Shown here piece by piece: positions 4,620 through 53,102 of a DNA stretch of 64,000 nucleotides. Source of the DNA: Ranitomeya imitator. Its lineage: Eukaryota. Under the pieces are notes generated by a model. The model saw only the letters and a list, made by a program, of their open reading frames with translations, did no database searches and was not told the origin of the DNA. Numbering within the stretch: position 1 is the first letter of the stretch; every line of letters starts with the position of its first letter. The stretch is taken from positions 2,728,001-2,792,000 of the forward strand of contig NC_091282.1 of assembly GCF_032444005.1 (NCBI RefSeq), written 5' to 3'. The position numbers and the translations under genes are program-made.

Positions 4620-4625
4620 ACAGGA

Positions 4626-6310: not shown

Positions 6311-6331
6311 AATTTTGCGGGCCTGACCGTT

Positions 6332-7703: not shown

Positions 7704-7706
7704 AGT

Positions 7707-10438: not shown

Positions 10439-10452
10439 CGGCTCCCCTTTTC
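10439..10452 (-). promoter_or_regulatory. Polypurine tract of Gypsy element B
   Basis: The minus strand reads GAAAAGGGGAGCCG immediately 5' of the LTR start TGTTACA. Confidence 0.75.
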
Positions 10453-10513
10453 AGCGACGCGATCGGCATACACAGTCTGATCCTTAACGGATCGGTTTGG
10501 GGATGACCGAAGT

Positions 10514-20626: not shown

Positions 20627-20639
20627 TCCAGTTCCATCA

Positions 20640-23230: not shown

Positions 23231-23259
23231 CGGGGAAGCCCAGGAGCATTGGTCTGAGC

Positions 23260-27560: not shown

Positions 27561-27915
27561 GGGATTCAAGCTTCAGGAGGCTAATTTGCATATTCCAGGT
27601 GCCTTCTGGGAGAAGCGAAGTCTCCCTAAGCTAGAAGATCGTTGGGTACAGCCGGGACCAGCTGCTTCGAAAGCATCACCAAACCAGGGATTCAAGCTTC
27701 AGGAGGCTAATTTGCATATTCCAGGTGCCTTCTGGGAGAAGCGAAGTCTCCCTAAGCTAGAAGATCGTTGGGTACAGCCGGGACCAGCTGCTTCGAAAGC
27801 ATCACCAAACCGCGCGCCGAATTTTTGCCTGTAGGACATTATTGCAAGAGAGCTTGGCTGAGTAGATTACACAAGAAGGAAAACACACAGCAAGTCAGCA
27901 GGATCTAGGAGCAAC

Positions 27916-28869
27916 ATGGCAGATGTGACAACCTACATGGTGAGCTGCAGCATGTGCTACATGTTCACAGATCGACCAGAAGAAGAATCCAATTTCACCT
28001 GTCAGAAGTGTAGACTAGTGGCCCTTTTAGAAGAAAAGGTGCGGGGTCTGGAAGAAAGAATAGCAACTTTGAAACTCATCAAAGAGAATGAAGACTTTCT
28101 AGACAGAACAGAAGCATCTCTACTGGTCACAGAAGGTGCAAAAAGTGTCAGAGAACCTCCAAAAGCAGATGAGTGGAAGCATGTGACCAAAAGAAGCAAG
28201 AAGACCATGGAGAAATCACCAACCACACAACTGAAGAACCGATATCAAATCTTTGTAGAGGATGAAGATGGCACACCTAAGAATGAAGCAATACCAGCAA
28301 GCAAAAAAGAAAAGGGCACACAGCAACAAGTGACAGCAAAAAGTACAGCCAAGAAGCAACGAAGAGTGGTGGTGGTGGGAGACTCACTACTGAGAGGCAC
28401 AGAAGCAGCCATCTGCAGACCGGACATAACTGCAAGAGAAGTATGCTGCCTTCCAGGTGCGATGATCAAGGATGTGACCGATAGGATACCAAAGCTCTTC
28501 AGCTCCAAGGACGTCCACCCATTTCTTCTGATACATGTTGGCACCAATGACACGGCAAGGAAGGACCTACCGACAATCTGCAAGGACTTTGAAGAGTTGG
28601 GGAAGAAAGTAAAGGAACTGGATGCACAGGTAGTTTTTTCTTCTATCCTTCCAGTAGACGGGCATGGCACCAGGAGATGGAACAGGATCCTTGATGCAAA
28701 CAACTGGCTAAGACGATGGTGCAGACAACAAGGATTTGGATTCCTGGACCACGGTGTGAATTACTGGTATGATGGACTCCTCGCCAGAGACGGACTACAC
28801 CTCAACAAACGTGGGAAACACACATTCGCCAGAAGACTCGCTACACTCATCAGGAGGGCGTTAAACTAG
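27916..28869 (+). CDS. CR1 copy 2 ORF1p (zinc finger, coiled coil, SGNH esterase), 317 aa
   Basis: Same motifs as copy 1 (GDSL, GTND, DGLH). Confidence 0.92.
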   Translation: MADVTTYMVSCSMCYMFTDRPEEESNFTCQKCRLVALLEEKVRGLEERIATLKLIKENEDFLDRTEASLLVTEGAKSVREPPKADEWKHVTKRSKKTMEKSPTTQLKNRYQIFVEDEDGTPKNEAIPASKKEKGTQQQVTAKSTAKKQRRVVVVGDSLLRGTEAAICRPDITAREVCCLPGAMIKDVTDRIPKLFSSKDVHPFLLIHVGTNDTARKDLPTICKDFEELGKKVKELDAQVVFSSILPVDGHGTRRWNRILDANNWLRRWCRQQGFGFLDHGVNYWYDGLLARDGLHLNKRGKHTFARRLATLIRRALN

Positions 28870-29006
28870 AAGAAGAGGGGACGGGAAGAAAAACATTAGA
28901 CTCGAACAAAGACGACCCAGGAAAACATACTCAGAAGGGAGGTAAGAACATTTCTAAAACAATCCACAGTGAGGAGATTGGAACAAAACAAAATCCTCTA
29001 AACTGC

Positions 29007-31786: not shown

Positions 31787-32799
31787 GTTCTGTAGAAGGA
31801 CGTAGATCTGGGGATTTATTATGATGGAATATAGGCTGAACTGGATGGACAAATGTCTTTTTTCGGCCTTACTAACTATGTTACTATGTTACTATGTTAC
31901 CTTGAGGAGCAGCCAAGTGAGCGCCCATGGTCACTGTGGAGGAGCTGCAGATATCCACCGCTCAGGGAGAGAATCTTTCCCCAGACAGCTACTATTCGTG
32001 TACTTCACACACCTGGCCCTTATGGGCTAATGGTGAAAAGTAGCCATTTTCGAAGTTCCCATTTGCAGTTTGCAAAAAGCCATGTAGGGGACACAACATG
32101 CACGTGGAAGAAGTTTCTCTGTCCAGATGAGACCAAAGAAGAACTTTTTGGGCTAAATGTAAAAGGCTCTATGTGGCAGCAGAGAGGTAACTCTGCACAT
32201 CACCCTGAAAACAATGTGCCCCAATATCACAGTGGTGGTTAGCATCATGTGGCAGTGAGGGGCAGGGAAGATGGATGGAGCTAAATACAGGACCATCCTG
32301 GGGGAAAACCTGTTGGAGGCTGCAAAAGACTTCAGACTGGGACGTAGGGTCACCTTCCAGCAGGACAACGACCCTAAACATCCTGCCAGACCTACAATGA
32401 AGGGTTTGGATCAGAGCATATTCATGTATGTGAACGGCCCAGTCACAGTCCAGACCTAAATCCCGCAGACGTCTCCATCCAATCTCACTAAGCGGGTGTG
32501 CAAAATGTCACCTTTAGATCTGCAAAGCTGGGCGAGACGGAGCCCAAAAGACTGCAGCAGTAACTGCAACAAAAGATGTCCCTACAAAGTACTGACTCGT
32601 GGGATGAACACTAATGGACCTCACAATGTTCAGATTTAGATTTGTAAAATAATTAGAATTATCATTTCCTTTACACGTCACAAACACTTGTTACTTTGTG
32701 TTCTAGCAAATAAAATCCAAATAAAATACATTTAAACTTGGGTGTAAAATGGAAAAACGTGGAAAAGTTCACTGGGTATAAAGACTTTTTCAAGGCCCC

Positions 32800-35700
32800 A
32801 TATTTCCATCTCCTCAGTGCCCAGTGTCTGCGTCTTCTCAATCATTTTCTGTTGATTCCTCTCATCTCTTTCCATCTCCTCTGTCACTTCTCGATGTTTT
32901 GCCTCTCCTCCCTGTCATTTCCTATGCTTGCATTTCCTCTCTCTCCATCTTAATGACTTCTCGGTGTTTTGCCTCTTCTCACTCTCTGCCTTCTTCTCAC
33001 TCACTTCTCGGTATGTTGCCTATCCTCTCTGTCTTCTTCTCAGTCACTTCCCAGTGTTTTGCCTCTCCTTTCTCGCAGTCTTCTGTCACTTCCCGGTGTT
33101 TCTAATCTTTCTCTTCCCGTCTACTCCTCAGTCAATTCCCGGTGTTTTACCATTCCTTTCACCATCTCCTTAGTCACTTCCTGGTTTTTCGCTTCGCCTT
33201 TATTTGTCTTCTCAGTCACTTCCTGGTGTTTCTCCTCTTTCTATTAATGATAAACTTACCTGGAGCAGCCAGTGCCAGGCAGCAGCTGCCAAGGCAAACA
33301 GGATCATGGGGTGCATTAAGAGGTCTGGATACACATGATGAGAGCATTATACTGCCTCTGTACAAATCCCTAGTTAGACCGCACATGGAGTACTATGTCC
33401 AGTTTTTGGCACCGGTGCTCAGGAAGGATATAATGGTACTAGAGAGAGTACAAAGGAGGGCAACAAAATTAATAAAGGGGATGGGAGAACTACAATACCC
33501 AGCTAGATTAGCAAAATTAGGATTATTTAGTCTAGAAAAAAGACGACTGAGGGGCGATCTAATAACCATGTATAAGTATATAAGGGGACAATACAAATAT
33601 CTCGCTGAGGATCTGTTTATACCAAGGAAGGTGACGGGCACAAGGGGGCATTCTTTGCGTCTGGAGAAGAGAAGGTTTTTCCACCAACATAGAAGAGGAT
33701 TCTTTACTGTTAGGGCAGTGAGAATCTGGAATTCCTTGCCTGAGGAGGTGGTGATGGCGAACTCAGTCGAGGGGTTCAAGAGAGGCATGGATGTCTTCCT
33801 GGAGCACAACAATATTGTATCATACAATTATTAGGTTCTGTAGAAGGACGAAGATCTGGGGATTTATTATGATGGAATATAGGCTGAACTGGATGGACAA
33901 ATGGCTTTTTTCGGCCTTACTAACTATGTTACTATGTATTCCCGTCTTCTCCTCATTCGCTTCCGTTGTTTCTCCTCTCATTCGTCCCTTCTTCTCCTCA
34001 GTCAGTTTGCGCTTTTCGCTTTTGCTCTCTCTCCATCTTCTCAATCAGTTCCCGGTATTTCTCCTCTTTCTCTTCCTGTCTCCTTAGTCACTTCCCACTG
34101 TTTCACCTTTCATCTCCGTATTCTCAGTTACTTCCCATTGTTTCGCATTTCCTCTCTCCCCGTCTTCTCAGTCACTTCCCAGGGTTTCTCCCCTCTCTCT
34201 GTCTTCTCAGTTACTTCTTGGTGTTTTGCCTATCCTCTCTGTCTTCTTCTCAGTCACTTCCCAGTGTTTTGCCTCTCCTTTCTCACAGTCTTCTGTCACT
34301 TCCCGGTGTTTCTAATCTTTCTCTTCCCGTCTACTCCTCAATCAATACCCGGTGTTTTGCCTATCCTCTCTGTCTTCTCCTCAGTCACTTCCCGGTCTTT
34401 TGCCTCTCCTTTCTCACAGTCTTCTGTCACTTCCCACTGTTTCTAATCTTTCTCTTCCCGTCTACTCCTCAGTCAATTCCCAGTGTTTTACCGTTCCTTT
34501 CACCATCTTCTCCTTAGTCACTTCCTGGTGTTTCGCCTCTCCTCTCTCCCCGTCTTCTCAGTCATTTCCCGGTGTTTTGTGTTTCCTTTCACCATTTCCT
34601 CCTCAGTCACTTCCCAGTGTTTCGCTTCTTCTTTCTCACAGTCTTCTCAGTCACTTTCCAGTGTTTCTCCTCTCTCTCTTCCCTTCTTCTCAGTCACTTC
34701 CGTTGTTTTTCCCCTCTCTCTTCTCATTTACTCCTCAGTCACTTCCCTGTGTTTAGCCTCTCCTTTGTTTTTCTTCTCAGTCACTACTTCCCGGTGTTTT
34801 GCCTCTCCTTTCTCACAGTCTTTCAGTCACTTCCTGGTGTTTATCCTCTTTGTCTTCCCATCTTCTCTTCAGTCACTTCCCACTGTTTCTCCTCTCTCTC
34901 TTCCTTTCTTCTCCTCAGTCACTTCATCATGTTTCGCCTCTCCTCTCTCCATCTTTCCTTTCAACATCGTCTCAGTCACTTTCTGGTGTTTCGCCTCTCT
35001 TTTCTCACAGTCTACTTAGTCACTTCCCGTTGTTTCGCCTCTCCTCTCTCCATCTTTGCTTTCACCATCGTCTCAGTCGCTTCCTGGTGTTTCGCCTCTC
35101 TTTTCTCACAGTCTTCTTAGTCACTTCCCGGTGTTTCTCATCTTTCTCTTCCCATCTTCTCCTCAATCACTTCCCGTTGTTTCTCCTCTCTCTTCCAGTC
35201 TTCTCAGTCACTTCCCAGTATTTTGCCTTTCCTTTCTCACAGTCTTCACTGTTACTTCCCGTTGTTTCTCCTCTCTCTCTTCCTGTCTCCTCCTCAGTCA
35301 CTTCCCAATGTTTTGTCTTTTCTTTCACCATCTAATCCTCTGATGCTTCCCAGTGTTTTGCCTCTCCTCAGTCACTTCCCGGTGTTTTGCTTCTCCTTTC
35401 TCACAGTCTTTACATTCAGTTACCGATGTTTCTCCTCTTTCTCTTGCCATCTCCTGCTCCGTCACTTCCCAGTGTTCCACCTCACCTTTCTCTGTATTCT
35501 TAGTTACTTCCCCGGTTTTCACATTTCCTCTCTCTGTCTCCTCCTCAGTCACTTCCCTGTGTTTCCCTTTCTTCTCTCATCGTTTTCTCACTCACTTGCC
35601 GCTGTGTTTTTGCTCTCCTCAGTAACTTCCCGGTTTTTCGCTTCTCCTTTCTCACAGTGTTTGCAGGCACTTACCGATGTTTATCCTCTTTCTCTTACCA

Positions 35701-38700
35701 TCTTCTCCTCAGTCACTTCCCGGTGTTTTGCTTCTCCCTTCTCACAGTCTTTACATTCAGTTACCGATGTTTCTCCTCTTTCTCTTGCCATCTCCTCCTC
35801 CGTCACTTCCCAGTGATTCCCTCTTCTCTGCCATTGTTTTCTCACTCACTTCCCGCTGTGTTTTGCCTCTCCTCAGTCACTTCCCGGGGTTTCGCTTCTC
35901 CTTTCTCAGTGTTTGCAGGCACTTACCGATGTTTATCCTCTTTCTCTTGCCGTCTTCTCCTCAGTCACTTCCCAGTGTTTCACCTCTCCTTTCTCTTTTT
36001 TCTGAGTTACTTCCCCGTGTTTTGCATTTCCTCTCGCTGTCTCCTCCTCATTCACTTCCCTGTGTTTCCCTCTCCTCTGTCATCGTTTTCTCACTCACTT
36101 TCCTCAGTATTTTTCTTCTCCTCAGTCACTTCCCAGTGTTTCACCTCTCCTTTTTCTGTCTTCTCAGTTACTTCCCCGGATTTCACATTTCCTCTCGCTG
36201 TCTCCTCCTCAGTCACTTCCCGGTGTTTCCCTCTCCTCTGTCATCGTTTTCTCACTCACTTTCCTCAGTATTTTTCCTCTCCTCAGTCACCTCCCTGTTT
36301 CCCTCTCCTCTGTCATCGTTTTCTCACTTTCCTCAGTATTTTTCCTCTCCTCAGTCACCTCCCTGTGTTTCCCTCTCCTCTGTCATCGTTTTCTCACTTT
36401 CCTCAGTATTTTACCTCTCCTCAGTCACCTCCCTGTGTTTCCCTCTCCTCTCTCATCGTTTTCTCACTTTCCTCAGTATTTTACCTCTCCTCAGTCACCT
36501 CCCTGTGTTTCCCTCTCCTCTGTCATCGTTTTCTCACTCACTTTCCTCAGTATTTTTCCTCTCCTCAGTCACCTCCCTGTGTTTCCCTCTCCTCTCTCAT
36601 CGTTTTCTCACTTTCCTCAGTGTTTTTCCTCTCCTCAGTCACTTCCCTGTGTTTCCCTCTCCTCTCTCATCGTTTTCTCACTTTCCTCAGTATTTTTCCT
36701 CTCCTCAGTCACCTCCCTGTGTTTCCCTCTCCTCTCTCATCTTTTTCTCACTTTCCTCAGTATTTTTCCTCTCCTCAGTCACCTCCCTGTGTTTCCCTCT
36801 CCTCTGTCATCGTTTTCTCACTTTCCTCAGTATTTTTCCTCTCCTCAGTCACCTCCCTGTGTTTCCCTCTCCTCTGTCATCGTTTTCTCACTTTCCTCAG
36901 TATTTTTCCTCTCCTCAGTCACCTCCCTGTTTCCCTCTCCTCTGTCATCGTTTTCTCACTTTCCTCAGTATTTTTCCCCTCCTCAGTCACCTCCCTGTTT
37001 CCCTATCCTCTGTCATCGTTTTCTCACTCACTTTCCTCAGTATTTTTTCTCTCCTCAGTCACTTCCCGGTGTTTCCCTCTCCTCTGTCATCGTTTTCTCA
37101 CTCACTTTCCTCAGTATTTTTCCTCTCCTCAGTCACTTCCCGGGGTTTCCCTATCCTCTGTCATCGTTTTCTCACTCACTTTCCTCAATATTTTTCCTCT
37201 CCTCAGTCACTTTCCGGTGTTTCCCTCTCCTCTGTCATCGTTTTCTCACTCACTTTCCTCAGTGTTTTTCCTCTCCTCAGTCACTTTCCGGTGTTTCCCT
37301 CTCCTCTGTCATCGTTTTCTCACTCACTTTCCTCAGTGTTTTTCCTCTCCTCAGTCACTTTCCGGTGTTTCCCTCTCCTCTGTCATCGTTTTCTCACTTT
37401 CCTCAGTATTTTTCCTCTCCTCAGTCACCTCCCTGTGTTTCCCTCTCTCTCATCGTTTTCTCACTTTCCTCAGTGTTTTTCCTCTCCTCAGTCACCTCCC
37501 TGTGTTTCCCTCTCTCTCATCGTTTTCTCACTTTCCTCAGTGTTTTTCCTCTCCTCAGTCACCTCCCTGTGTTTCTCTCTCCTCTGTCATTGTTTTCTCA
37601 CTCACTTTCCTCAGTATTTTTCCTCTCCTCAGTCACCTCCCTGTGTTTCTCTCTCCTCTGTCATCGTTTTCTCCCTTTCCTCAGTATTTTTCCTCTCCTC
37701 AGTCACTTCCCGGTGTTTCCCTCTCCTCTGTCATCGTTTTCTCACTCACTTTCCTCAGTATTTTTCCTCTCCTCAGTCACTTCCCGGTGTTTCCCTCTCC
37801 TCTGTCATCGTTTTCTCACTTTCCTCAGTATTTTCCCTCTCCTCCGTCACTTCCCTGTGTTTCCCTCTCCTCTCATCGTTTTCTCACTCACTTTCCTCAA
37901 TATTTTTCCTCTCCTCAGTCACCTCCCTGTGCTTCCCTCTCCTCTGTCATCGTTTTCTCACTCACTTTCCTCAGTGTTTTTCCTCTCCTCAGTCACTTCC
38001 CTGTGTTTCCCTCTCCTCTGTCATCATTTTCTCACTCACTTTCCTCAGTATTTTTCCTCTCCTCGGTCACCTCCCGGTGTTTCCCTCTCCTCTGTCATCG
38101 TTTTCTCACTTTCCTCAGTATTTTTCCTCTCCTCAGTCACCTCCTGTGTTTCCCTCTCCTCTGTCATCGTTTTCTCACTTTCCTCAGCATTTTTCCTCTC
38201 CTCAGTCACCTCCCTGTGTTTCCCTCTCCTCTGTCATCGTTTTCTCACTTTCCTCAGTATTTTTCCTCTCCTCAGTCACCTCCCTGTGTTTCCCTCTCCT
38301 CTGTCATCGTTTTCTCACTTTCCTCAGTATTTTTCCTCTCCTCAGTCACTTCCCTGTGTTTCCCTCTCCTCTCTCATCGTTTTCTCACTTTCCTCAGTGT
38401 TTTTCCTCTCCTCAGTCACCTCCCTGTGTTTCCGTCTCCTCTGTCATCGTTTTCTCACTTTCCTCAGTGTTTTTCCTCTCCTCAGTCACCTCCCTGTGTT
38501 TCCCTCTCCTCTGTCATCGTTTTCTCACTCACTTTCCTCAGTATTTTTCCTCTCCTCAGTCACCTCCCTGTGTTTCTCTCTCCTCTGTCATCGTTTTCTC
38601 ACTTTCCTCAGTATTTTTCCTCTCCTCAGTCACTTCCCTGTGTTTCCCTCTCCTCTGTCATCTTTTTCTCACTTTCCTCAGTATTTTTCCTCTCCTCAGT

Positions 38701-40440
38701 CACTTCCCTGTGTTTCCCTCTCCTCTGTCATCGTTTTCTCACTCACTTTCCTCAGTGTTTTTCCTCTCCTCAGTCACTTCCCTGTGTTTCCCTCTCCTCT
38801 GTCATCGTTTTCTCACTCACTTTCCTCAGTGTTTTTCCTCTCCTCAGTCACTTCCCTGTGTTTCCCTCTCCTCTGTCATCATTTTCTCACTCACTTTCCT
38901 CAGTATTTTTCCTCTCCTCGGTCACCTCCCGGTGTTTCCCTCTCCTCTGTCATCGTTTTCTCACTTTCCTCAGTATTTTTCCTCTCCTCAGTCACTTCCC
39001 TGTGTTTCTCTCTCCTCTGTCATCGTTTTCTCTCACTTTCCTCAGTATTTTTCCTCTCCTCAGTCACCTCCCTGTGTTTCCCTCTCCTCTGTCATCGTTT
39101 TCTCACTTTCCTCAGTATTTTTCCTCTCCTCAGTCACCTCCCTGTGTTTCTCTCTCCTCTGTCATCGTTTTCTCACTTTCCTCAGTATTTTTCCTCTCCT
39201 CAGTCACTTCCCTGTGTTTCCCTCTCCTCTGTCATCGTTTTCTCACTCACTTTCCTCAGTATTTTTCCTCTCCTCAGTCACCTCCCTGTGTTTCTCTCTC
39301 CTCTGTCATCGTTTTCTCACTTTCCTCAGTATTTTTCCTCTCCTCAGTCACTTCCCTGTGTTTCCCTCTCCTCTGTCATCGTTTTCTCACTCACTTTCCT
39401 CAGTATTTTTCCTCTCCTCAGTCACCTCCCTGTGTTTCCCTCTCCTCTGTCATCGTTTTCTCACTTTCCTCAGTATTTTTCCTCTCCTCAGTCACTTCCC
39501 TGTGTTTCTCTCTCCTCTGTCATCGTTTTCTTTCTCACTTTCCTCAATATTTTTCCTCTCCTCAGTCACTTCCCTGTGTTTCTCTCTCCTCTGTCATCGT
39601 TTTCTCTCTCACTTTCCTCAGTATTTTTCCTCTCCTCAGTCACCTCCCTGTGTTTCCCTCTCCTCTGTCATCGTTTTCTCACTTTCCTCAGTATTTTTCC
39701 TCTCCTCAGTCACCTCCCTGTGTTTCTCTCTCCTCTGTCATCGTTTTCTCACTTTCCTCAGTATTTTTCCTCTCCTCAGTCACTTCCCTGTGTTTCCCTC
39801 TCCTCTGTCATCGTTTTCTCACTCACTTTCCTCAGTATTTTTCCTCTCCTGTCACCTCCCTGTGTTTCCCTCTCCTCTGTCATCGTTTTCTCACTTTCCT
39901 CAGTATTTTTCCTCTCCTCAGTCACCTCCCTGTGTTTCCCTCTCCTCTGTCATCGTTTTCTCTCTCACTTTCCTCAGTATTTTTCCTCTCCTCAGTCACC
40001 TCCCTGTGTTTCTCTCTCCTCTGTCATCGTTTTCTCACTTTCCTTAGTATTTTTCCTCTCCTCAGTCACTTCCCTTTGTTTCCCTCTCCTCTGTCATCGT
40101 TTTCTCACTCACTTTCCTCAGTATTTTTCCTCTCCTCAGTCACCTCCCTGTGTTTCTCCCTCCTCTGTCATCGTTTTCTCACTTTCCTCAGTATTTTTCC
40201 TCTCCTCAGTCACCTCCCTGTGTTTCTCTCTCCTCTGTCATCGTTTTCTCACTTTCCTCAGTATTTTTCCTCTCCTCAGTCACTTCCCTGTGTTTCCCTC
40301 TCCTCTGTCATCGTTTTCTCACTCACTTTCCTCAGTATTTTTCCTCTCCTGTCACCTCCCTGTGTTTCCCTCTCCTCTGTCATCGTTTTCTCACTTTCCT
40401 CAGTGTTTTTCCTCTCCTCAGTCACTTCTCGGTGCTTCGC
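32800..40440. repeat. Pyrimidine-rich satellite: degenerate from 32800 to ~36200, then a homogeneous 70/74-bp unit (~60 copies)
   Basis: The core CTCCTCAGTCAC(T/C)TCCC recurs throughout. ctgtcatcgt occurs at 38161 and 38231 (period 70). Confidence 0.93.
33244..33937 (+). mobile_element. 5'-truncated CR1 copy 4 inside the satellite
   Basis: Matches the ORF2 C-terminus, 3' UTR and TATGTTAC tail. It is more diverged than copies 1-3 and has possible TATT duplication. Confidence 0.92.
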
Positions 40441-41229: not shown

Positions 41230-42620
41230 TGTAGGCGCACCTGAATAAGGGACCGCCGAATGTAGGCGCACCTGAATAAGTGACCGCCGGATGTAGGCAC
41301 ACCTGAGTAAGCGACCACCGAATGTAGGCACACCTGAGTAAGTGACCACCGAATGTAGACGCACCTAAATAAGTGACCGCCGAATGTAGGCGCACCTGAA
41401 TAAGGGACCACCGAATGTAGGCACACCTGAGTAAGCGACCACCGAATGTAGGCACACCTGAGTAAGTGACCACCGAATGTAGACGCACCTAAATAAGTGA
41501 CCACCGAATGTAGGCGCACCTGAATAAGCGACTGCCGAATGTAGGCGCACCTGAATAAGTGACCGCCGAATGTAGGCGCACCTGAATAAGTGACCGCTGA
41601 ATGTAGGCACACCTGAATAAGTGACCGCTGAATGTAGGCGTACCTGAATAAGTGACCGCCGAATGTAGGCGCACCTGAATAAGTGACCGCCGAATGTAGG
41701 CGCACCTGAATAAGTGACCGCCGAATGTAGGCGCACCTAAATAAGCGACTGCCGAATGTAGGCGCACCTGAATAAGCAACCACCGAATGTAGGCGCACCT
41801 GAATAAGTGACCGCCGAATGTAGGCGCACCTAAATAAGCGACTGCCGAATGTAGGCGCACCTGAATAAGCAACCACCGAATGTAGGCGCACCTGAATAAG
41901 TGACCGCTGAATGTAGGCGCACCTGAATAAGTGACCGCCGAATGTAGGCGCACCTGAATAAGTGACCGCCGAATGTAGGCGCACCTGAATAGGCGACCGC
42001 TGAATGTAGGTGCACCTAAATAAGCGACCGCCGAATGTAGGTACACCTGAATAAGGGACCGCTGAATGTAGGCGCACCTGAATAAGGGACCGCCGTATGT
42101 AGGCACACCTGAATAAGGGACCGCTGAATGTAGGCGCACCTGAATAAGCAACCACCGAATGTAGGCGCACCTGAATAAGTGACCGCCGAATGTAGGCGCA
42201 CCTGAATAAGTGACCGCCGAATGTAGGCGCACCTGAATAAGTGACCGCCGAATGTAGGCGCACCTGAATAGGCGACCGCTGAATGTAGGCGCACCTAAAT
42301 AAGCGACCGCCGAATGTAGGTACACCTGAATAAGGGACCGCTGAATGTAGGCGCACCTGAATAAGGGACCGCCGTATGTAGGCGCACCTGAATAAGGGAC
42401 CGCTGAATGTAGGCGCACCTGAATAAGCAACCACCGAATGTAGGTACACCTGAATAAGGGACCGCTGAATGTAGGTGCACCTGAATAAGGGACCGCCGTA
42501 TGTAGGCGCACCTGAATAAGGGACCGCCGAATGTAGGCGCACCTGAATAAGGGACCGCCGAATGTAGGCGCACCTGAATAAGGGACCGCCGAATGTAGGC
42601 GCACCTGAATAAGCGACCGC
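41230..42620. repeat. 31-bp minisatellite (GAATGTAGGCGCACCTGAATAAGTGACCGCC), about 45 copies, with a 279-bp (9-mer) block
   Basis: The unit starts at 41661 and 41692. ORF breakpoints at 42015 and 42294 recur at 279 bp. Confidence 0.93.
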
Positions 42621-42869: not shown

Positions 42870-43130
42870 CTTTCTTTGTTCTGTATGGCTCCCACTAACC
42901 CTGCGCATGCAGTCTCCTATATCTATAAGCTTCTATTAGATAGTGGTCCGGATATGCTTCCCCCTGATTGTAAGGCGTGGGAAGAGAGCTCCATCAAACC
43001 TTCACAAGAAAGCAATGGTATAAATGTTTCCATCTCATAAATCTTATGTAGCCACTAAAGCTCAGGAAACTAGTTATAAAATATTATCTAGATGGTTTCC
43101 TGTTCCTTACATAAATGGTTCCCAAGAGTA
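42870..43130 (+). pseudogene. Old L1-like ORF2 C-terminal fragment
   Basis: Reads ...QETSYKILSRW..VP..LHKWFP across frameshifts, resembling the pre-CCHC region of L1 ORF2. Confidence 0.45.
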
Positions 43131-43340
43131 AAAAAAATCCGTGTACGGATAATTAAGAGAATTGGAATGGGAGCGTGTCCTAGCTGGCCATGTGAGTGGA
43201 AGCAGGGAAGAGTGCTCCTGCTGCCAGAAGGACAAAAATCCTGCTTTAACCCCGATTTTCGGGTAACCTCACCTAAATCCGGCTGGCTGAAGGTCCGGAG
43301 AGTGCAGCAGTGCGGAGCAGCAGGTCCGGAGTCGGCAGCG

Positions 43341-44019
43341 ATGACCAGGAGGCGGCAGAAAGACGCTGGCACCAGCGATGCAGGAGCTGGCCAAGATGGC
43401 TCCGATGCTAGGGAGGACGCCGAGAAGGAGAACGCCGCATGTCAGCGGCGCATGGAGGTGGCCGCAAAGCTGCAGCAGTATGCCAGAGTGGAGGCTGCTG
43501 AGGAGGCAGAACCAGGATCTGGAGCTGGAGCTGACCAGGAGGAGGAGGAAGCAAGCACAGCCGAGCAGCATGAGGTACAGAGGGGGAAGGAGAGAGGCAG
43601 CATGGCTGGGGCTAGTGGGGGACCTGAAGCCATATCACAGGGAGAGGAGCCGACTCTTAGAGATGTTATCACACTGATCTCTTCATGTCAGCAATCCCTG
43701 AACTCCTTGGCCCAGCAGATGCAGGAAGTTAAAGGGGACACGGCACAGATTAATGCGGCTCTGCAGAAAATGGACAAACGTATAGGAGTGGTGGAGGAGA
43801 GGGTGAGCACGGCAGAAGATCACATAGTTAAGCTACAAAAAGCTGAAAAGAAGTTCGCCCAAGCAATAGCCGAGCTCGCTGCCAAAAATGAGGATCTGGA
43901 AAATAGATCCAGAAGAAATAATATACGTATAGTGGGGCTGCCTGAAAAGACTGAGGGGAGAAATCCCACTGAGTTTGTGGAGAACTGGCTGCTGGAGAAG
44001 ATTGGGAACACAGTGTTGA
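43341..44019 (+). pseudogene. L1 ORF1, N-terminal part (coiled coil to RRM start)
   Basis: LENRSRRNNIRIVGLPEKTEG, the L1 ORF1p signature. The frame resumes at 52258. Confidence 0.9.
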
Positions 44020-44024
44020 TTCAA

Positions 44025-47000
44025 GGGATTCAAGCTTCAGGAGGCTAATTTGCATATTCCAGGTGCCTTCTGGGAGAAGCGAAGTCTCCCTAAGCTAGAA
44101 GATCGTTGGGTACAGCCGGGACCAGCTGCTTCGAAAGCATCACCAAACCAGGGATTCAAGCTTCAGGAGGCTAATTTGCATATTCCAGGTGCCTTCTGGG
44201 AGAAGCGAAGTCTCCCTAAGCTAGAAGATCGTTGGGTACAGCCGGGACCAGCTGCTTCGAAAGCATCACCAAACCAGGGATTCAAGCTTCAGGAGGCTAA
44301 TTTGCATATTCCAGGTGCCTTCTGGGAGAAGCGAAGTCTCCCTAAGCTAGAAGATCGTTGGGTACAGCCGGGACCAGCTGCTTCGAAAGCATCACCAAAC
44401 CAGGGATTCAAGCTTCAGGAGGCTAATTTGCATATTCCAGGTGCCTTCTGGGAGAAGCGAAGTCTCCCTAAGCTAGAAGATCGTTGGGTACAGCCGGGAC
44501 CAGCTGCTTCGAAAGCATCACCAAACCAGGGATTCAAGCTTCAGGAGGCTAATTTGCATATTCCAGGTGCCTTCTGGGAGAAGCGAAGTCTCCCTAAGCT
44601 AGAAGATCGTTGGGTACAGCCGGGACCAGCTGCTTCGAAAGCATCACCAAACCAGGGATTCAAGCTTCAGGAGGCTAATTTGCATATTCCAGGTGCCTTC
44701 TGGGAGAAGCGAAGTCTCCCTAAGCTAGAAGATCGTTGGGTACAGCCGGGACCAGCTGCTTCGAAAGCATCACCAAACCAGGGATTCAAGCTTCAGGAGG
44801 CTAATTTGCATATTCCAGGTGCCTTCTGGGAGAAGCGAAGTCTCCCTAAGCTAGAAGATCGTTGGGTACAGCCGGGACCAGCTGCTTTGAAAGCATCACC
44901 AAACCAGGGATTCAAGCTTCAGGAGGCTAATTTGCATATTCCAGGTGCCTTCTGGGAGAAGCGAAGTCTCCCTAAGCTAGAAGATCGTTGGGTACAGCCG
45001 GGACCAGCTGCTTCGAAAGCATCACCAAACCAGGGATTCAAGCTTCAGGAGGCTAATTTGCATATTCCAGGTGCCTTCTGGGAGAAGCGAAGTCTCCCTA
45101 AGCTAGAAGATCGTTGGGTACAGCCGGGACCAGCTGCTTCGAAAGCATCACCAAACCAGGGATTCAAGCTTCAGGAGGCTAATTTGCATATTCCAGGTGC
45201 CTTCTGGGAGAAGCGAAGTCTCCCTAAGCTAGAAGATCGTTGGGTACAGCCGGGACCAGCTGCTTCGAAAGCATCACCAAACCAGGGATTCAAGCTTCAG
45301 GAGGCTAATTTGCATATTCCAGGTGCCTTCTGGGAGAAGCGAAGTCTCCCTAAGCTAGAAGATCGTTGGGTACAGCCGGGACCAGCTGCTTCGAAAGCAT
45401 CACCAAACCAGGGATTCAAGCTTCAGGAGGCTAATTTGCATATTCCAGGTGCCTTCTGGGAGAAGCGAAGTCTCCCTAAGCTAGAAGATCGTTGGGTACA
45501 GCCGGGACCAGCTGCTTCGAAAGCATCACCAAACCAGGGATTCAAGCTTCAGGAGGCTAATTTGCATATTCCAGGTGCCTTCTGGGAGAAGCGAAGTCTC
45601 CCTAAGCTAGAAGATCGTTGGGTACAGCCGGGACCAGCTGCTTCGAAAGCATCACCAAACCAGGGATTCAAGCTTCAGGAGGCTAATTTGCATATTCCAG
45701 GTGCCTTCTGGGAGAAGCGAAGTCTCCCTAAGCTAGAAGATCGTTGGGTACAGCCAGGACCAGCTGCTTCGAAAGCATCACCAAACCAGGGATTCAAGCT
45801 TCAGGAGGCTAATTTGCATATTCCAGGTGCCTTCTGGGAGAAGCGAAGTCTCCCTAAGCTAGAAGATCGTTGGGTACAGCCGGGACCAGCTGCTTCGAAA
45901 GCATCACCAAACCAGGGATTCAAGCTTCAGGAGGCTAATTTGCATATTCCAGGTGCCTTCTGGGAGAAGCGAAGTCTCCCTAAGCTAGAAGATCGTTGGG
46001 TACAGCCGGGACCAGCTGCTTCGAAAGCATCACCAAACCAGGGATTCAAGCTTCAGGAGGCTAATTTGCATATTCCAGGTGCCTTCTGGGAGAAGCGAAG
46101 TCTCCCTAAGCTAGAAGATCGTTGGGTACAGCCGGGACCAGCTGCTTCGAAAGCATCACCAAACCAGGGATTCAAGCTTCAGGAGGCTAATTTGCATATT
46201 CCAGGTGCCTTCTGGGAGAAGCGAAGTCTCCCTAAGCTAGAAGATCGTTGGGTACAGCCGGGACCAGCTGCTTCGAAAGCATCACCAAACCAGGGATTCA
46301 AGCTTCAGGAGGCTAATTTGCATATTCCAGGTGCCTTCTGGGAGAAGCGAAGTCTCCCTAAGCTAGAAGATCGTTGGGTACAGCCGGGACCAGCTGCTTC
46401 GAAAGCATCACCAAACCAGGGATTCAAGCTTCAGGAGGCTAATTTGCATATTCCAGGTGCCTTCTGGGAGAAGCGAAGTCTCCCTAAGCTAGAAGATCGT
46501 TGGGTACAGCCGGGACCAGCTGCTTCGAAAGCATCACCAAACCAGGGATTCAAGCTTCAGGAGGCTAATTTGCATATTCCAGGTGCCTTCTGGGAGAAGC
46601 GAAGTCTCCCTAAGCTAGAAGATCGTTGGGTACAGCCGGGACCAGCTGCTTCGAAAGCATCACCAAACCAGGGATTCAAGCTTCAGGAGGCTAATTTGCA
46701 TATTCCAGGTGCCTTCTGGGAGAAGCGAAGTCTCCCTAAGCTAGAAGATCGTTGGGTACAGCCGGGACCAGCTGCTTCGAAAGCATCACCAAACCAGGGA
46801 TTCAAGCTTCAGGAGGCTAATTTGCATATTCCAGGTGCCTTCTGGGAGAAGCGAAGTCTCCCTAAGCTAGAAGATCGTTGGGTACAGCCGGGACCAGCTG
46901 CTTCGAAAGCATCACCAAACCAGGGATTCAAGCTTCAGGAGGCTAATTTGCATATTCCAGGTGCCTTCTGGGAGAAGCGAAGTCTCCCTAAGCTAGAAGA

Positions 47001-48177
47001 TCGTTGGGTACAGCCGGGACCAGCTGCTTCGAAAGCATCACCAAACCAGGGATTCAAGCTTCAGGAGGCTAATTTGCATATTCCAGGTGCCTTCTGGGAG
47101 AAGCGAAGTCTCCCTAAGCTAGAAGATCGTTGGGTACAGCCAGGACCAGCTGCTTCGAAAGCATCACCAAACCAGGGATTCAAGCTTCAGGAGGCTAATT
47201 TGCATATTCCAGGTGCCTTCTGGGAGAAGCGAAGTCTCCCTAAGCTAGAAGATCGTTGGGTACAGCCGGGACCAGCTGCTTCGAAAGCATCACCAAACCA
47301 GGGATTCAAGCTTCAGGAGGCTAATTTGCATATTCCAGGTGCCTTCTGGGAGAAGCGAAGTCTCCCTAAGCTAGAAGATCGTTGGGTACAGCCGGGACCA
47401 GCTGCTTCGAAAGCATCACCAAACCAGGGATTCAAGCTTCAGGAGGCTAATTTGCATATTCCAGGTGCCTTCTGGGAGAAGCGAAGTCTCCCTAAGCTAG
47501 AAGATCGTTGGGTACAGCCGGGACCAGCTGCTTCGAAAGCATCACCAAACCAGGGATTCAAGCTTCAGGAGGCTAATTTGCATATTCCAGGTGCCTTCTG
47601 GGAGAAGCGAAGTCTCCCTAAGCTAGAAGATCGTTGGGTACAGCCGGGACCAGCTGCTTCGAAAGCATCACCAAACCAGGGATTCAAGCTTCAGGAGGCT
47701 AATTTGGATATTCCAGGTGCCTTCTGGGAGAAGCGAAGTCTCCCTAAGCTAGAAGATCGTTGGGTACAGCCGGGACCAGCTGCTTCGAAAGCATCACCAA
47801 ACCAGGGATTCAAGCTTCAGGAGGCTAATTTGCATATTCCAGGTGCCTTCTGGGAGAAGCGAAGTCTCCCTAAGCTAGAAGATCGTTGGGTACAGCCGGG
47901 ACCAGCTGCTTCGAAAGCATCACCAAACCAGGGATTCAAGCTTCAGGAGGCTAATTTGCATATTCCAGGTGCCTTCTGGGAGAAGCGAAGTCTCCCTAAG
48001 CTAGAAGATCGTTGGGTACAGCCGGGACCAGCTGCTTCGAAAGCATCACCAAACCAGGGATTCAAGCTTCAGGAGGCTAATTTGCATATTCCAGGTGCCT
48101 TCTGGGAGAAGCGAAGTCTCCCTAAGCTAGAAGATCGTTGGGTACAGCCGGGACCAGCTGCTTGGAAAGCATCACCA
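44025..48177 (+). repeat. 33 tandem copies of the 126-bp CR1 5' monomer (putative promoter/enhancer array)
   Basis: GGGATTCAAG starts at 44025, 44151, ... 48057, giving 32 intervals of 126 bp. ATTTGCAT is present in 32 of 33 units. Confidence 0.97.
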
Positions 48178-48271
48178 TTTTTGCCTGTAGGACATTATTG
48201 CAAGAGAGCTTGGCTGAGTAGATTACACAAGAAGGAAAACACACAGCAAGCCAGCAGGATCTAGGAGCAAC

Positions 48272-49225
48272 ATGGCAGATGTGACAACCTACATGGTGAG
48301 CTGCAGCATGTGCTACATGTTCACAGATCGACCAGAAGAAGAATCCAATTTCACCTGTCAGAAGTGTAGACTAGTGGCCCTTTTAGAAGAAAAGGTGCGG
48401 GGTCTGGAAGAAAGAATAGCAACTTTGAAACTCATCAAAGAGAATGAAGACTTTCTAGACAGAACAGAAGCATCTCTACTGGTCACAGAAGGTGCAAAAA
48501 GTGTCAGAGAACCTCCAAAAGCAGATGAGTGGAAGCATGTGACCAAAAGAAGCAAGAAGACCATGGAGAAATCACCAACCACACAACTGAAGAACCGATA
48601 TCAAATCTTTGTAGAGGATGAAGATGGCACACCTAAGAATGAAGCAATACCAGCAAGCAAAAAAGAAAAGGGCACACAGCAACAAGTGACAGCAAAAAGT
48701 ACAGCCAAGAAGCAACGAAGAGTGGTGGTGGTGGGAGACTCACTACTGAGAGGCACAGAAGCAGCCATCTGCAGACCGGACATAACTGCAAGAGAAGTAT
48801 GCTGCCTTCCAGGTGCGATGATCAAGGATGTGACCGATAGGATACCAAAGCTCTTCAGCTCCAAGGACGTCCACCCATTTCTTCTGATACATGTTGGCAC
48901 CAATGACACGGCAAGGAAGGACCTACCGACAATCTGCAAGGACTTTGAAGAGTTGGGGAAGAAAGTAAAGGAACTGGATGCACAGGTAGTTTTTTCTTCT
49001 ATCCTTCCAGTAGACGGGCATGGCATCAGGAGATGGAACAGGATCCTTGATGCAAACAACTGGCTAAGACGATGGTGCAGACAACAAGGATTTGGATTCC
49101 TGGACCACGGTGTGAATTACTGGTATGATGGACTCCTCGCCAGAGACGGACTACACCTCAACAAACCTGGGAAACACACATTCGCCAGAAGACTCGCTAC
49201 ACTCATCAGGAGGGCGTTAAACTAG
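48272..49225 (+). CDS. CR1 copy 3 ORF1p (zinc finger, coiled coil, SGNH esterase), 317 aa
   Basis: Intact ORF with GDSL, GTND and DGLH. Its ATG is the first ATG downstream of the element start. Confidence 0.94.
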   Translation: MADVTTYMVSCSMCYMFTDRPEEESNFTCQKCRLVALLEEKVRGLEERIATLKLIKENEDFLDRTEASLLVTEGAKSVREPPKADEWKHVTKRSKKTMEKSPTTQLKNRYQIFVEDEDGTPKNEAIPASKKEKGTQQQVTAKSTAKKQRRVVVVGDSLLRGTEAAICRPDITAREVCCLPGAMIKDVTDRIPKLFSSKDVHPFLLIHVGTNDTARKDLPTICKDFEELGKKVKELDAQVVFSSILPVDGHGIRRWNRILDANNWLRRWCRQQGFGFLDHGVNYWYDGLLARDGLHLNKPGKHTFARRLATLIRRALN

Positions 49226-49362
49226 AAGAAGAGGGGACGGGAAGAAAAACATTAGACTCGAACAAAGACGACCCAGGAAAACATACTCAGAAGGGAGGTA
49301 AGAACATTCCTAAAACAATCCACAGTGAGGAGATTGGAACAAAACAAAATCCTCTAAACTGC

Positions 49363-52143
49363 ATGCTCGCAAACGCCAGAAGCCTGACAAACAAGATGGA
49401 AGAACTAGAAGCAGAAATATCTACAGGTAACTTTGACATAGTGGGAATAACCGAGACATGGTTAGATGAAAGCTATGACTGGGCAGTTAACTTACAGGGT
49501 TACAGTCTGTTTAGAAAGGATCGTAAAAATCGGAGAGGAGGAGGGGTTTGTCTCTATGTAAAGTCTTGTCTAAAGTCCACTTTAAGGGAGGATATTAGCG
49601 AAGGGAATGAGGATGTCGAGTCCATATGGGTTGAAATTCATGGAGGGAAAAATGGTAACAAAATTCTCATTGGGGTCTGTTACAAACCCCCAAATATAAC
49701 AGAAAGCATGGAAAGTCTACTTCTAAAGCAGATAGATGAAGCTGCAACCCATAATGAGGTCCTGGTTATGGGGGACTTTAACTACCCGGATATTAACTGG
49801 GAAACAGAAACCTGTGAAACCCATAAAGGCAACAGGTTTCTGCTAATAACCAAGAAAAATTATCTTTCACAATTGGTGCAGAATCCAACCAGAGGAGCAG
49901 CACTTTTAGACCTAATACTATCTAATAGACCTGACAGAATAACAAATCTGCAGGTGGTTGGGCATTTAGGAAATAGCGACCACAATATTGTGCAGTTTCA
50001 CCTGTCTTTCACTAGGGGGACTTGTCAGGGAGTCACAAAAACATTGAACTTTAGGAAGGCAAAGTTTGAACAGCTTAGAGATGCCCTTAATCTGGTAGAC
50101 TGGGACAATATCCTCAGAAATGAGAATACAGATAATAAATGGGAAATGTTTAAGAACATCCTAAATAGGCAGTGTAAGCGGTTTATACCTTGTGGGAATA
50201 AAAGGACTAGAAATAGGAAAAACCCAATGTGGCTAAACAAAGAAGTAAGACAGGCAATTAACAGTAAAAAGAAAGCATTTGCACTACTAAAGCAGGATGG
50301 CACCATTGAAGCTCTAAAAAACTATAGGGAGAAAAATACTTTATCTAAAAAACTAATTAAAGCTGCCAAAAAGGAAACAGAGAAGCACATTGCTAAGGAG
50401 AGTAAAACTAATCCCAAACTGTTCTTCAACTATATCAATAGTAAAAGAATAAAAACTGAAAATGTAGGCCCCTTAAAAAATAGTGAGGAAAGAATGGTTG
50501 TAGATGACGAGGAAAAAGCTAACATATTAAACACCTTCTTCTCCACGGTATTCACGGTGGAAAATGAAATGCTAGGTGAAATCCCAAGAAACAATGAAAA
50601 CCCTATATTAAGAGTCACCAATCTAACCCAAGAAGAGGTGCGAAACCGGCTAAATAAGATTAAAATAGATAAATCTCCGGGTCCGGATGGCATACACCCA
50701 CGAGTACTAAGAGAACTAAGTAATGTAATAGATAAACCATTATTTCTTATTTTTAGGGACTCTATAGCGACAGGGTCTGTTCCGCAGGACTGGCACATAG
50801 CAAATGTGGTGCCAATATTCAAAAAGGGCTCTAAAAGTGAACCTGGAAATTATAGGCCAGTAAGTCTAACCTCTATTGTTGGTAAAATATTTGAAGGGTT
50901 TCTGAGGGATGTTATTCTGGATTATCTCAATGAGAATAACTGTTTAACTCCATATCAGCATGGGTTTATGAGAAATCGCTCCTGTCAAACCAATCTAATC
51001 AGTTTTTATGAAGAGGTAAGCTATAGGCTGGACCACGGTGAGTCATTGGACGTGGTATATCTCGATTTTTCCAAAGTGTTTGATACCGTGCCGCACAAGA
51101 GGTTGGTACACAAAATGAGAATGCTTGGTCTGGGGGAAAATGTGTGTAAATGGGTTAGTAACTGGCTTAGTGATAGAAAGCAGAGGGTGGTTATAAATGG
51201 TATAGTCTCTAACTGGGTCGCTGTGACCAGTGGGGTACCGCAGGGGTCAGTATTGGGACCTGTTCTCTTCAACATATTCATTAATGATCTGGTAGAAGGT
51301 TTACACAGTAAAATATCGATATTTGCAGATGATACAAAACTATGTAAAGCAGTTAATACAAGAGAAGATAGTATTCTGCTACAGATGGATCTGGATAAGT
51401 TGGAAATTTGGGCTGAAAGGTGGCAGATGAGGTTTAACAATGATAAATGTAAGGTTATACACATGGGAAGAGGGAATCAATATCACCATTACACACTGAA
51501 CGGGAAACCACTGGGTAAATCTGACAGGGAGAAGGACTTGGGGATCCTAGTTAATGATAAACTTACCTGGAGCAGCCAGTGCCAGGCAGCAGCTGCCAAG
51601 GCAAACAGGATCATGGGGTGCATTAAAAGAGGTCTGGATACACATGATGAGAGCATTATACTGCCTCTGTACAAATCCCTAGTTAGACCGCACATGGAGT
51701 ACTGTGTCCAGTTTTGGGCACCGGTGCTCAGGAAGGATATAATGGAACTAGAGAGAGTACAAAGGAGGGCAACAAAATTAATAAAGGGGATGGGAGAACT
51801 ACAATACCCAGATAGATTAGCGAAATTAGGATTATTTAGTCTAGAAAAAAGACGACTGAGGGGCGATCTAATAACCATGTATAAGTATATAAGGGGACAA
51901 TACAAATATCTCGCTGAGGATCTGTTTATACCAAGGAAGGTGACGGGCACAAGGGGGCATTCTTTGCGTCTGGAGGAGAGAAGGTTTTTCCACCAACATA
52001 GAAGAGGATTCTTTACTGTTAGGGCAGTGAGAATCTGGAATTGCTTGCCTGAGGAGGTGGTGATGGCGAACTCAGTCGAGGGGTTCAAGAGAGGCCTGGA
52101 TGTCTTCCTGGAGCAGAACAATATTGTATCATACAATTATTAG
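49363..52143 (+). CDS. CR1 copy 3 ORF2p (APE endonuclease + reverse transcriptase), 926 aa, uninterrupted
   Basis: Endonuclease motifs NARSL, ITETW, GDFN, LDL and SDH; RT motifs [26 protein letters not shown] and FADD. Confidence 0.95.
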   Translation: MLANARSLTNKMEELEAEISTGNFDIVGITETWLDESYDWAVNLQGYSLFRKDRKNRRGGGVCLYVKSCLKSTLREDISEGNEDVESIWVEIHGGKNGNKILIGVCYKPPNITESMESLLLKQIDEAATHNEVLVMGDFNYPDINWETETCETHKGNRFLLITKKNYLSQLVQNPTRGAALLDLILSNRPDRITNLQVVGHLGNSDHNIVQFHLSFTRGTCQGVTKTLNFRKAKFEQLRDALNLVDWDNILRNENTDNKWEMFKNILNRQCKRFIPCGNKRTRNRKNPMWLNKEVRQAINSKKKAFALLKQDGTIEALKNYREKNTLSKKLIKAAKKETEKHIAKESKTNPKLFFNYINSKRIKTENVGPLKNSEERMVVDDEEKANILNTFFSTVFTVENEMLGEIPRNNENPILRVTNLTQEEVRNRLNKIKIDKSPGPDGIHPRVLRELSNVIDKPLFLIFRDSIATGSVPQDWHIANVVPIFKKGSKSEPGNYRPVSLTSIVGKIFEGFLRDVILDYLNENNCLTPYQHGFMRNRSCQTNLISFYEEVSYRLDHGESLDVVYLDFSKVFDTVPHKRLVHKMRMLGLGENVCKWVSNWLSDRKQRVVINGIVSNWVAVTSGVPQGSVLGPVLFNIFINDLVEGLHSKISIFADDTKLCKAVNTREDSILLQMDLDKLEIWAERWQMRFNNDKCKVIHMGRGNQYHHYTLNGKPLGKSDREKDLGILVNDKLTWSSQCQAAAAKANRIMGCIKRGLDTHDESIILPLYKSLVRPHMEYCVQFWAPVLRKDIMELERVQRRATKLIKGMGELQYPDRLAKLGLFSLEKRRLRGDLITMYKYIRGQYKYLAEDLFIPRKVTGTRGHSLRLEERRFFHQHRRGFFTVRAVRIWNCLPEEVVMANSVEGFKRGLDVFLEQNNIVSYNY

Positions 52144-52257
52144 GTTCTGTAGAAGGACGTAGATCTGGGTATTTATTATGATGGAATATAGGCTGAACTG
52201 GATGGACAAATGTCTTTTTTCGGCCTTACTAACTATGTTACTATGTTACTATGTTGA

Positions 52258-52643
52258 CAAAAGTCTTTGCTGTTGAACGGGCTCATAGGGTCCCGCCGCA
52301 GCCCCCTGCCCCAGGAGCAAATCCCCGTACCATGCTTGCTAAAATACTGAACTACAGGGACAGAGACATTATCCTTAGAAAGGCTAGAGAGATGGAGGAT
52401 CTGACGGCTGGAGGTCAGAAAATCGCCATTTATCCGGATTATTCCGCTGCGGTTCAGAAACAGCGGATGAAGTTTACTGGAGTCAAGCGGCGACTGAGGG
52501 AGCTGGGAGTGCAGTACTCAGTGATGTTTCCCGCCAAGCTGAGACTGGTGGCTTTTAATAAGACACATTTCTTCCTGACACCGGAGGACGCTACCCAGTG
52601 GCTTGATACTCATGAGAAAAAACTTAAGGGAATGGGCGACTGA
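52258..52643 (+). pseudogene. L1 ORF1, C-terminal part
   Basis: VERAHRVP...PRTMLAK...IYPDYS...FPAKLR, the L1 ORF1p RRM/CTD motifs. Confidence 0.9.
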
Positions 52644-53102
52644 CATTTCGGCGAGATCCAGTTGGGATTTGTTTTCTCTGTAGATGGAGGAGAGTTCTGC
52701 GCTCGTTAGCAATGGTTAAAGAGTTGAGCAACTGTTGGGGGTTTTACTGGGCCATATTGAAGGAATGGCCGGAGGGGACAGTACCAACTACTAAGTACGG
52801 GGGAGGAGGGTTATGCTGGGTACTGTGAACTGGTTTGGTACTTTTTCTATATGTTAATATAAGTTGAAATGTTAAGATACAATAAAGTGAAAGTTGGGGG
52901 GGAAATTGTGATTGCTATGGCAGCGGGACGCGAATGGAGAGGGTTAAGTAAGGGAGAGTGTTCGCAGTGGGCAGTGGAGCCCCACTCTTGATGAGAGGAA
53001 GAATGCGTTATATTGGGGGGGTTCGGGGGGCAAGTTGGGAGGGGGCAGGGGGGGTGGGAGGGTTGGGGCAGCTCATACTTGGGAAATTGGATACTTTAAG
53101 AA

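Follow-up and report, generated by a model that had tools for sequence, protein, structure and literature searches.

The DNA analysed is a 64-kb window of Ranitomeya imitator (contig NC_091282.1, positions 2,728,001 to 2,792,000 of the forward strand), and all coordinates given here are those of the window. Its focal element, referred to as copy C, is a long interspersed nuclear element (LINE) of the CR1 type with a long tandem array at its 5' end, and two sister copies in the same window are referred to as copies A and B. Copy C spans 44020 to ~52251 (~8.23 kb), and half of the element is array. The three copies carry 2, 2 and 33 units, which establishes a monomeric 5' untranslated region (UTR) with a variable number of units on a CR1 element; such variation had been proposed in an earlier sequence-only reading of this DNA.

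Array, element body and sister copies

The array was identified by Tandem Repeats Finder with a period of 126, 33.0 copies, 99% matches, no indels and a score of 8273. When the assembled sequence was cut unit by unit, the first 32 units proved to be full-sized (126 bp) and the last to measure 122 nt. Exactly five departures from the unit consensus were observed, namely C109T in unit 7, G95A in units 14 and 25, C30G in unit 30 and C109G in unit 33, and beyond these changes the units are letter-identical, which gives a star-like pattern. Unit positions 95 and 109 both lie within CpGs, and the CpG observed/expected ratio is 0.47 in the units, which is not above the window average. A HindIII site (AAGCTT) is present once per unit, at unit positions 9-14. 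The sequence-only reading had described an array of 33 x 126 bp at this place, with about five point variants and a single HindIII site in each unit, and the coordinates, the unit count in the assembly, the variants and the site were all borne out.

The array is the extreme 5' end of an inserted CR1 element nested in the first open reading frame (ORF1) of an L1 element, since no more than four unassigned bases (TTCA) lie between the target and unit position 1. The features of copy C, its insertion site and the other copies of the family are listed in Table 1. The possible target-site duplication is ambiguous in that TGTT also continues the CR1 tail repeat, and the last 4 nt of the 3' UTR are ambiguous with target sequence. 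At the 5' junction of copy C (44014-44031), GA+TTCA+AG repeats unit positions 4-11 and resembles a short unit restart, and at the 5' junction of copy A (4620-4624) five bases (CCTGT) stand before unit position 5. At the 3' junctions (304, 31898 and 52251-52257), 3-6 nt are common to the target and the (ACTATGTT)n tail, namely ACTA, ACC/TACC and TGTT+GA, and this sharing would fit priming of reverse transcription by the nicked target annealing to the tail repeat.

Table 1. Features of copy C, its insertion site and the related copies in the window.
Feature	Position	Strand	Basis
Copy A; two 128-bp variant units; 98.45% identical to copy C; ORF2 broken; inside a Gypsy-type pol gene	304-4619	-	
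Copy B; two units; 99.24% identical to the body of copy C; ORF2 broken; other sequence context	27560-31898	+	
Fourth copy; 5'-truncated, 3' end only; no units; 97.86% identical to copy C; adjoins a satellite array	33241-33937	+	
Host L1 ORF1, front part with coiled coil and beginning of RRM-like part, interrupted by the CR1 element	43092-44019	+	ORF translation
Possible target-site duplication TGTTGA (6 bp), left copy	44014-44019	.	Direct reading
TTCA, four bases between target and unit position 1	44020-44023	+	Sequence, alignment
Array, repeated part of the CR1 5' UTR	44024-48177	+	Tandem Repeats Finder and unit-by-unit cutting
First octamer ATTTGCAT, exact, unit positions 25-32	44048-44055	+	Motif search
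First Staf/SPH-like box, unit positions 36-54, 16/19 consensus matches	44059-44077	-	Consensus of PMC5493778
First box like a proximal sequence element (PSE), unit positions 62-79, 10/12 specified positions	44085-44102	+	Consensus of PMC5493778
Linker (tether), unique, 94 nt, without ATG, between the cut-off last unit and ORF1	48178-48271	+	
ORF1, 317 aa; N-terminal CxxC...CxxC, coiled-coil-like middle, GDSL esterase	48272-49225	+	Pfam, PDB match
ORF2, 926 aa, intact; endonuclease residues 4-207, reverse transcriptase residues 488-706	49363-52143	+	Pfam
3' UTR, ~110 nt, no poly(A); three terminal 8-nt repeats ACTATGTT at 52232-52255	52144-52255	+	
Host L1 ORF1, resumption, in frame with 43092-44019	52258-52643	+	ORF translation

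An intact esterase ORF1 and an intact reverse transcriptase ORF2 of a CR1 LINE had already been read from the letters, and both frames were indeed found open, with matches in Pfam and PDB. ORF1 was matched by PF13472 (Lipase_GDSL_2) with an E-value of 6.7e-09, a match that passes the cut-off of the model, its CxxC...CxxC motif is located within residues 11-33, and its nearest solved structure is PDB 4c1b ("ORF1-encoded protein", E 8.4e-23). ORF2 was matched by Exo_endo_phos (E 5e-16) for the endonuclease and by RVT_1 (E 2.7e-32) for the reverse transcriptase. Because 4c1b is from a zebrafish element of the L2 clade, an esterase ORF1 is no means of telling CR1 from L2; towards its C-terminus, ORF2 presumably resembles that of chicken CR1. 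The 3' end is built of octamer repeats without poly(A); copies C and B have three ACTATGTT repeats each, and copy A has a variant of them. An 8-nt (octamer) microsatellite at the 3' end is a feature of CR1, and the ORFs and 3' end of copy C match the CR1 hallmarks listed for that group (PMC4316615). Copy C is thereby assigned to the CR1-type LINEs by its sequence, "CR1" being used in the broad, CR1-like sense, and it is young, full-length and coding-intact. For the hairpin that is conserved in the 3' UTR of CR1, a stem is predicted at ~52190-52226, with a fold no better than that of shuffled sequences (z -0.86).

Among the window copies, both ORFs are open in copy C only. The units, linker and ORF1 of copy C recur in two further insertion contexts, those of copies A and B. 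In these copies about two monomers had been read at 4372-4619 and 27561-27810, and two-unit arrays were located at 4372-4619 (copy A, minus strand, 128-bp variant) and 27557-27811 (copy B). The two units of copy A are identical to each other. The units of A differ from those of B and C by five substitutions and a 2-nt insertion (~5%), whereas the bodies differ by 1.55%, indicating that the units evolve in concert within a lineage. In copy A, the ORF2 frame (1033-3477, minus strand) remains open past the site of the copy C start codon, and its upstream extension runs into the end of ORF1. The element split by copy A is a Gypsy-type long terminal repeat retrotransposon (304-11422, minus strand) with gag at 6524-7429, protease at 5792-6268 and reverse transcriptase at 4663-5829; its pol frame continues below 304, and a second piece with reverse transcriptase/RNase H is located at 10514-11422.

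A comparison with sequencing runs was performed over 47930-52400. The run data are Logan contigs of 24 runs, in which identical units are collapsed, and the RNA labels of the runs are guesses. In the DNA run the family is extremely abundant, with 72,220 pieces on this interval, and in a run from a second organism a contig spans the unit-to-unit junction without any difference. Contigs of three guessed-RNA runs cover the whole element; depth in the guessed-RNA runs increases toward the 3' end, a slope that truncated copies embedded in other transcripts would produce. In the DNA run, word depth is ~2.6x higher at the CR1 3' end than over ORF1, and, if depth is trustworthy, this suggests an unusually large share of full-length copies. 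In the window itself three of the four copies are full-length; provided that depth can serve as a guide, so high a share is unusual for CR1. Where the last unit meets the linker, an insert was observed in copy B (10 nt, 27812-27821) and in a contig of another run aligned at 48055/48177, in which it is a 20-nt G+C-rich palindrome; in the copies with such an insert, the last unit is complete and not cut at position 122.

Start phase, leader and candidate promoter motifs

The 5' end falls at unit position 1 in copy C, at position 1 in copy B (or at -3, should ACC not be a target duplication of 3 bp) and, by alignment, at position 5 in copy A, so that the ends are spread over 5-9 nt. The chance that two further ends fall no more than 4 nt from the first among 126 phases is ~0.005. 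A shared start phase is not what random 5' truncation, the usual rule for CR1, would produce and speaks against it, and the fixed phase likewise argues against random truncation inside arrays. It would be expected if RNAs with their 5' end at a unit boundary were copied in full.

The leader of copy C, 4,253 nt in length, contains no ATG on the sense strand and 67 on the opposite strand, and the leaders of copies A and B are also without ATG. Since the leader is free of ATG, the ATG of ORF1 would be the first one met by a scanning ribosome even with 33 units.

Motifs like those of the promoters of small nuclear RNA (snRNA) genes were found in the units. All 36 octamers ATTTGCAT in the window lie within CR1 units, one per unit, where 1.95 would be expected by chance; the octamer is exact in 32 of the 33 array units, and unit 30 (47678-47803) has lost it through C30G. 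The Staf/SPH-like box lies 3 nt from the octamer on the opposite strand, with a background of ~1.5e-4 per position (19.5 per window), and the PSE-like box, scored with a human consensus, has a background of ~2.7e-4 per position (34.5 matches per window). Counted from the first base of the next unit, the PSE-like box is located at -65 to -48, centred ~56 bp upstream, and the octamer at -102 to -95, with the octamer one unit further back at -228 to -221. In vertebrate snRNA genes, the PSE usually lies at about -55 and the enhancer at about -220. None of the unit substitutions of copy A touches the octamer, and one hits a position that the PSE consensus leaves unspecified. The 2 nt inserted in the A-type unit are placed after the Staf-like box and upstream of the PSE-like box, so that the distance from the PSE-like box to the unit start is kept. 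An Rfam search of 43000-53000 and of the whole window gave no match, so that the window offers no snRNA gene for PSE comparison.

The explanation favoured here, with moderate confidence, is that the array is the repeated 5' UTR of a young, intact CR1-type LINE inserted in an L1 ORF1, with a monomeric head like that of L1 whose units are most likely the promoter, and that this locus represents a long variant. Judged from sequence features, the units probably contain a promoter. The units would carry the promoter of the element, transcripts would begin at the first base of a unit, the array and linker would be carried as an ATG-free leader, and new insertions, when copied in full, would have a unit boundary as their 5' junction. 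The octamer and the Staf-like box would together act as an enhancer, with the PSE-like box as the element placed ~56 bp upstream of the start of the next unit. The sequence-only reading had interpreted the array as a promoter of the variable-number tandem repeat kind; the tandem units at the CR1 5' end, their variable number and the build resembling that of mouse L1 were upheld, and the promoter role was only made likelier, by the start phase, the ATG-free leader and the three motifs. The further suggestions of that reading, that copy number may tune expression or protect against 5' truncation, found no support in the analysis.

Several observations weigh against a promoter in the units, or against the importance of long arrays for the family. 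The start phase is drawn from just three copies, a small sample. The motif matches are partial, were made to a degenerate, human-based consensus and were sought after the fact. The enhancer of snRNA genes stands ~220 bp upstream of the start, not ~100 bp, and in the array a distance of ~220 bp is attained solely from the unit before the last. The snRNA 3' box, searched with its printed consensus, had no match in the whole window. No transcript start was seen in the run data, which are assembled contigs from which starts are unreadable, and the sole contig labelled "RNA?" that joins a unit to the linker has 23 nt of unit behind unrelated sequence. Word depth in the DNA run is ~1.7-2.9x higher over the unit than over the linker, depth not being a copy number; if it is trustworthy, it suggests a typical copy with ~2-3 units. 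Long arrays may then be exceptions, and two units may suffice for the family. In addition, Pol II on snRNA genes reportedly does not go over to long-range elongation (PMC3337830).

A bolder proposal is that the units are true snRNA-type Pol II promoters (Oct-1, Staf, SNAPc), with transcription starting on the first base of the unit that follows, and act as a promoter ratchet on a LINE that took over the promoter type of snRNA genes; this is considered improbable. If it were true, the first unit of any copy would be silent, each round of retrotransposition would lose at least one unit, two-unit copies would be near dead ends, and long arrays, that of copy C among them, would be lasting sources. 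The family would then survive only by rebuilding in bursts, through repeated copying of the 5' unit at reverse transcription or unequal exchange, which would explain both the letter-perfect arrays and the concerted evolution of units within a lineage. Because the window contains no 3' box, the element is not classed as an snRNA-type gene, and the promoter part alone may work like one.

Age of the array and origin of its unit number

Compared with copies A and B, the body of copy C contains 8 private substitutions in 4,074 bp, and at five of these eight sites at least 99% of the DNA-run depth reads the other letter. The private changes amount to 3-4 in 4,154 bp for the array and 5-8 in 4,074 bp for the body, and the difference is not significant (p 0.14-0.75). 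CpG transitions account for three of the four private array changes, as would be expected of real genomic mutations. Because the density of private changes equals that of the body, the array was apparently long at or near insertion and did not grow slowly. Its growth to roughly the present size, 33 units as against 2 in the two neighbours, appears to have been a single burst at or close to the time of insertion, after which it only decayed, gathering point mutations; slow stepwise growth or ongoing homogenisation would leave a different pattern. The burst could have come from a long source RNA, from multiple rounds of first-unit copying in reverse transcription or second-strand priming, or from early unequal exchange. 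G at position 109 is present in the last unit alone, as in lineage A, and the other 32 units are copies of one unit type; this pattern is what repeated first-unit copying would predict, and unequal exchange would also allow it. For G95A, common to units 14 and 25, two origins may be considered, recurrent mutation at the CpG and one 11-unit duplication.

The unit number could also have arisen by neutral local amplification, in which a two-unit copy was inserted and then expanded by unequal sister-chromatid exchange or replication slippage into a nascent transposon-seeded satellite whose extra units have no role. The sister copies A and B both have two units, the depth ratio suggests that few units are the norm, and 28.8% of the window is in tandem arrays, so that arrays readily form in this region or genome. 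The G95A change in units 14 and 25 fits one 11-unit duplication, and an extreme 50-unit array of mouse L1 has been ascribed to unequal crossing-over (PMC6454616). However, with equal densities of private mutations in array and body, such growth must have been early and fast and must since have stopped. Stepwise growth should spread older variants over the units, but three of the four variants are singletons, and the neighbouring arrays are 66-97% alike, not 99.9%. Local amplification is regarded as rather unlikely, and it concerns only the origin of the unit number, a promoter in the units being still compatible with it.

A count of 33 produced by the assembly, with real units that were over- or under-counted as near-identical repeats, is judged very unlikely. 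Near-identical tandem units are a known hazard, the read comparison used k-mer contigs, which collapse the array, and other mouse assemblies show fewer L1 units, possibly from similarity that is hard to assemble (PMC6454616). Against this, the unit-specific variants in units 7, 14, 25 and 30, among them three CpG transitions, anchor the array at a spacing of 0.6-1.4 kb, and both array ends are in register with unique flanks. An array of 4.15 kb is also short for current long reads. Practically no credence is given to the idea that the array codes for a repetitive protein, although one of the three sense frames of the 126-bp unit is stop-free and an open frame of 1,404 aa runs through 44050-48264. 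This coding reading was rejected, the whole array being free of ATG. The open stretch stops 8 nt short of ORF1 and is in a different frame, it is not kept in the sister lineage with its 128-bp A-type unit, Pfam gave just sub-threshold matches of zero stretch, and among three frames of 42 codons one that is open would turn up in about one-third of cases. The burst at or near insertion is the preferred origin of the unit number.

Comparison with known systems

The build of copy C is like that of mouse and rat L1 in architecture, not by family homology, with tandem units at the 5' end, a short unique tether and then ORF1. As in mouse L1, the unit number varies between copies, and a 50-unit array is on record there (PMC6454616). 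Mouse L1 units carry transcription signals (PMC5381506), and the way in which they multiply is debated, with cDNA or second-strand synthesis set against unequal crossing-over (PMC5381506, PMC6454616). The element described here differs from L1 in belonging to another LINE clade, with CR1-type ORFs, an esterase ORF1 and an 8-nt repeat tail in place of poly(A). The units are 126 bp long, compared with ~200 bp in mouse L1 and ~650 bp in rat L1, and carry an octamer with Staf-like and PSE-like boxes, unlike the CpG-island signals or the YY1 site of mouse units (PMC5381506, PMC11602158). In the CR1 array the incomplete unit stands at the end and the phase at which the first unit begins is fixed, and the promoter role is here a prediction from the sequence.

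For chicken CR1-H, the 5' UTR starts transcription in oocytes, and the 5' end of full-length copies is the start and is demethylated in oocytes (bioRxiv 10.64898/2026.03.19.712899). Since the 5' end coincides there with the transcription start, a CR1 5' UTR can, by analogy, be an internal promoter; no tandem units were described in that system. Exact 5' UTRs of amniote CR1 are hard to fix as nearly all copies are truncated (PMC4316615).

With the vertebrate snRNA promoter, in which a distal sequence element (DSE) with octamer and Staf site and a PSE serve Oct-1, Staf and SNAPc, the unit shares an exact octamer, an adjoining Staf-like box and a PSE-like box, and the lack of a TATA-like box resembles the Pol II type of these genes. 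The differences are that the product would be a coding RNA of 4-8 kb and not a short RNA, that the CR1 start is deduced from insertions, that no 3' box is present, and that the matches reach 10/12 for the PSE and 16/19 for Staf. Newt satellite 2 consists of amphibian tandem units that each have an snRNA-type Pol II promoter (Coats et al. 1994, cited in PMC2220036), indicating that such promoters do occur inside repeated units. It is a hammerhead-ribozyme satellite that gives unit-length RNAs and is not the head of an autonomous LINE.

In the literature searched, the coverage of which is incomplete and leaves Repbase outside it, no CR1 with a monomeric or tandem-unit 5' end was found, and the genome paper of the dyeing poison frog does not mention CR1 or monomers. 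The architecture is known from mouse and rat L1, and what appears to be new is such a head, with unrelated units, on a CR1-type element. A repeated 5' module with promoter activity also occurs on a non-LTR retrotransposon of Dictyostelium, TRE5-A, in the form of the A-modules, which the sequence-only reading had named. TRE5-A differs in having one or two modules, in being targeted to tRNA genes and in belonging to an unrelated clade, and arrays of tens of modules are not known from it.

CR1 is the main LINE of birds, reptiles and many other vertebrates, and its 5' UTR and promoter are poorly known, the copies being truncated (PMC4316615). The family described here gives the 5' end directly, with many young full-length copies, exact 5' ends, a simple promoter candidate and from 2 to tens of units. 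If the units are promoters, the solution seen in mouse L1 would have arisen independently in another LINE clade. The family is suited to testing unit number against transcription, silencing and the survival of progeny, and to the study of unit multiplication, which is still debated for mouse L1 (PMC6454616). Such arrays are also assembly hazards and possible variable-number markers.

In the remainder of the window, further repeats were observed. The CR1 head takes up 6.5% of the window, and the other tandem arrays, located at 8644-9378, 13652-15126, 15965-17177, 22632-25604, 33945-40428 and 41230-42620, with units of 20, 31, 34, 60, 70/144 and 84/149/382 bp and identities of 66-97%, are unrelated to it. 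The region 17994-21126 (minus strand) contains pieces of another LINE reverse transcriptase (17994-20141) and pieces of a Tc1-like transposase (20623-21126).

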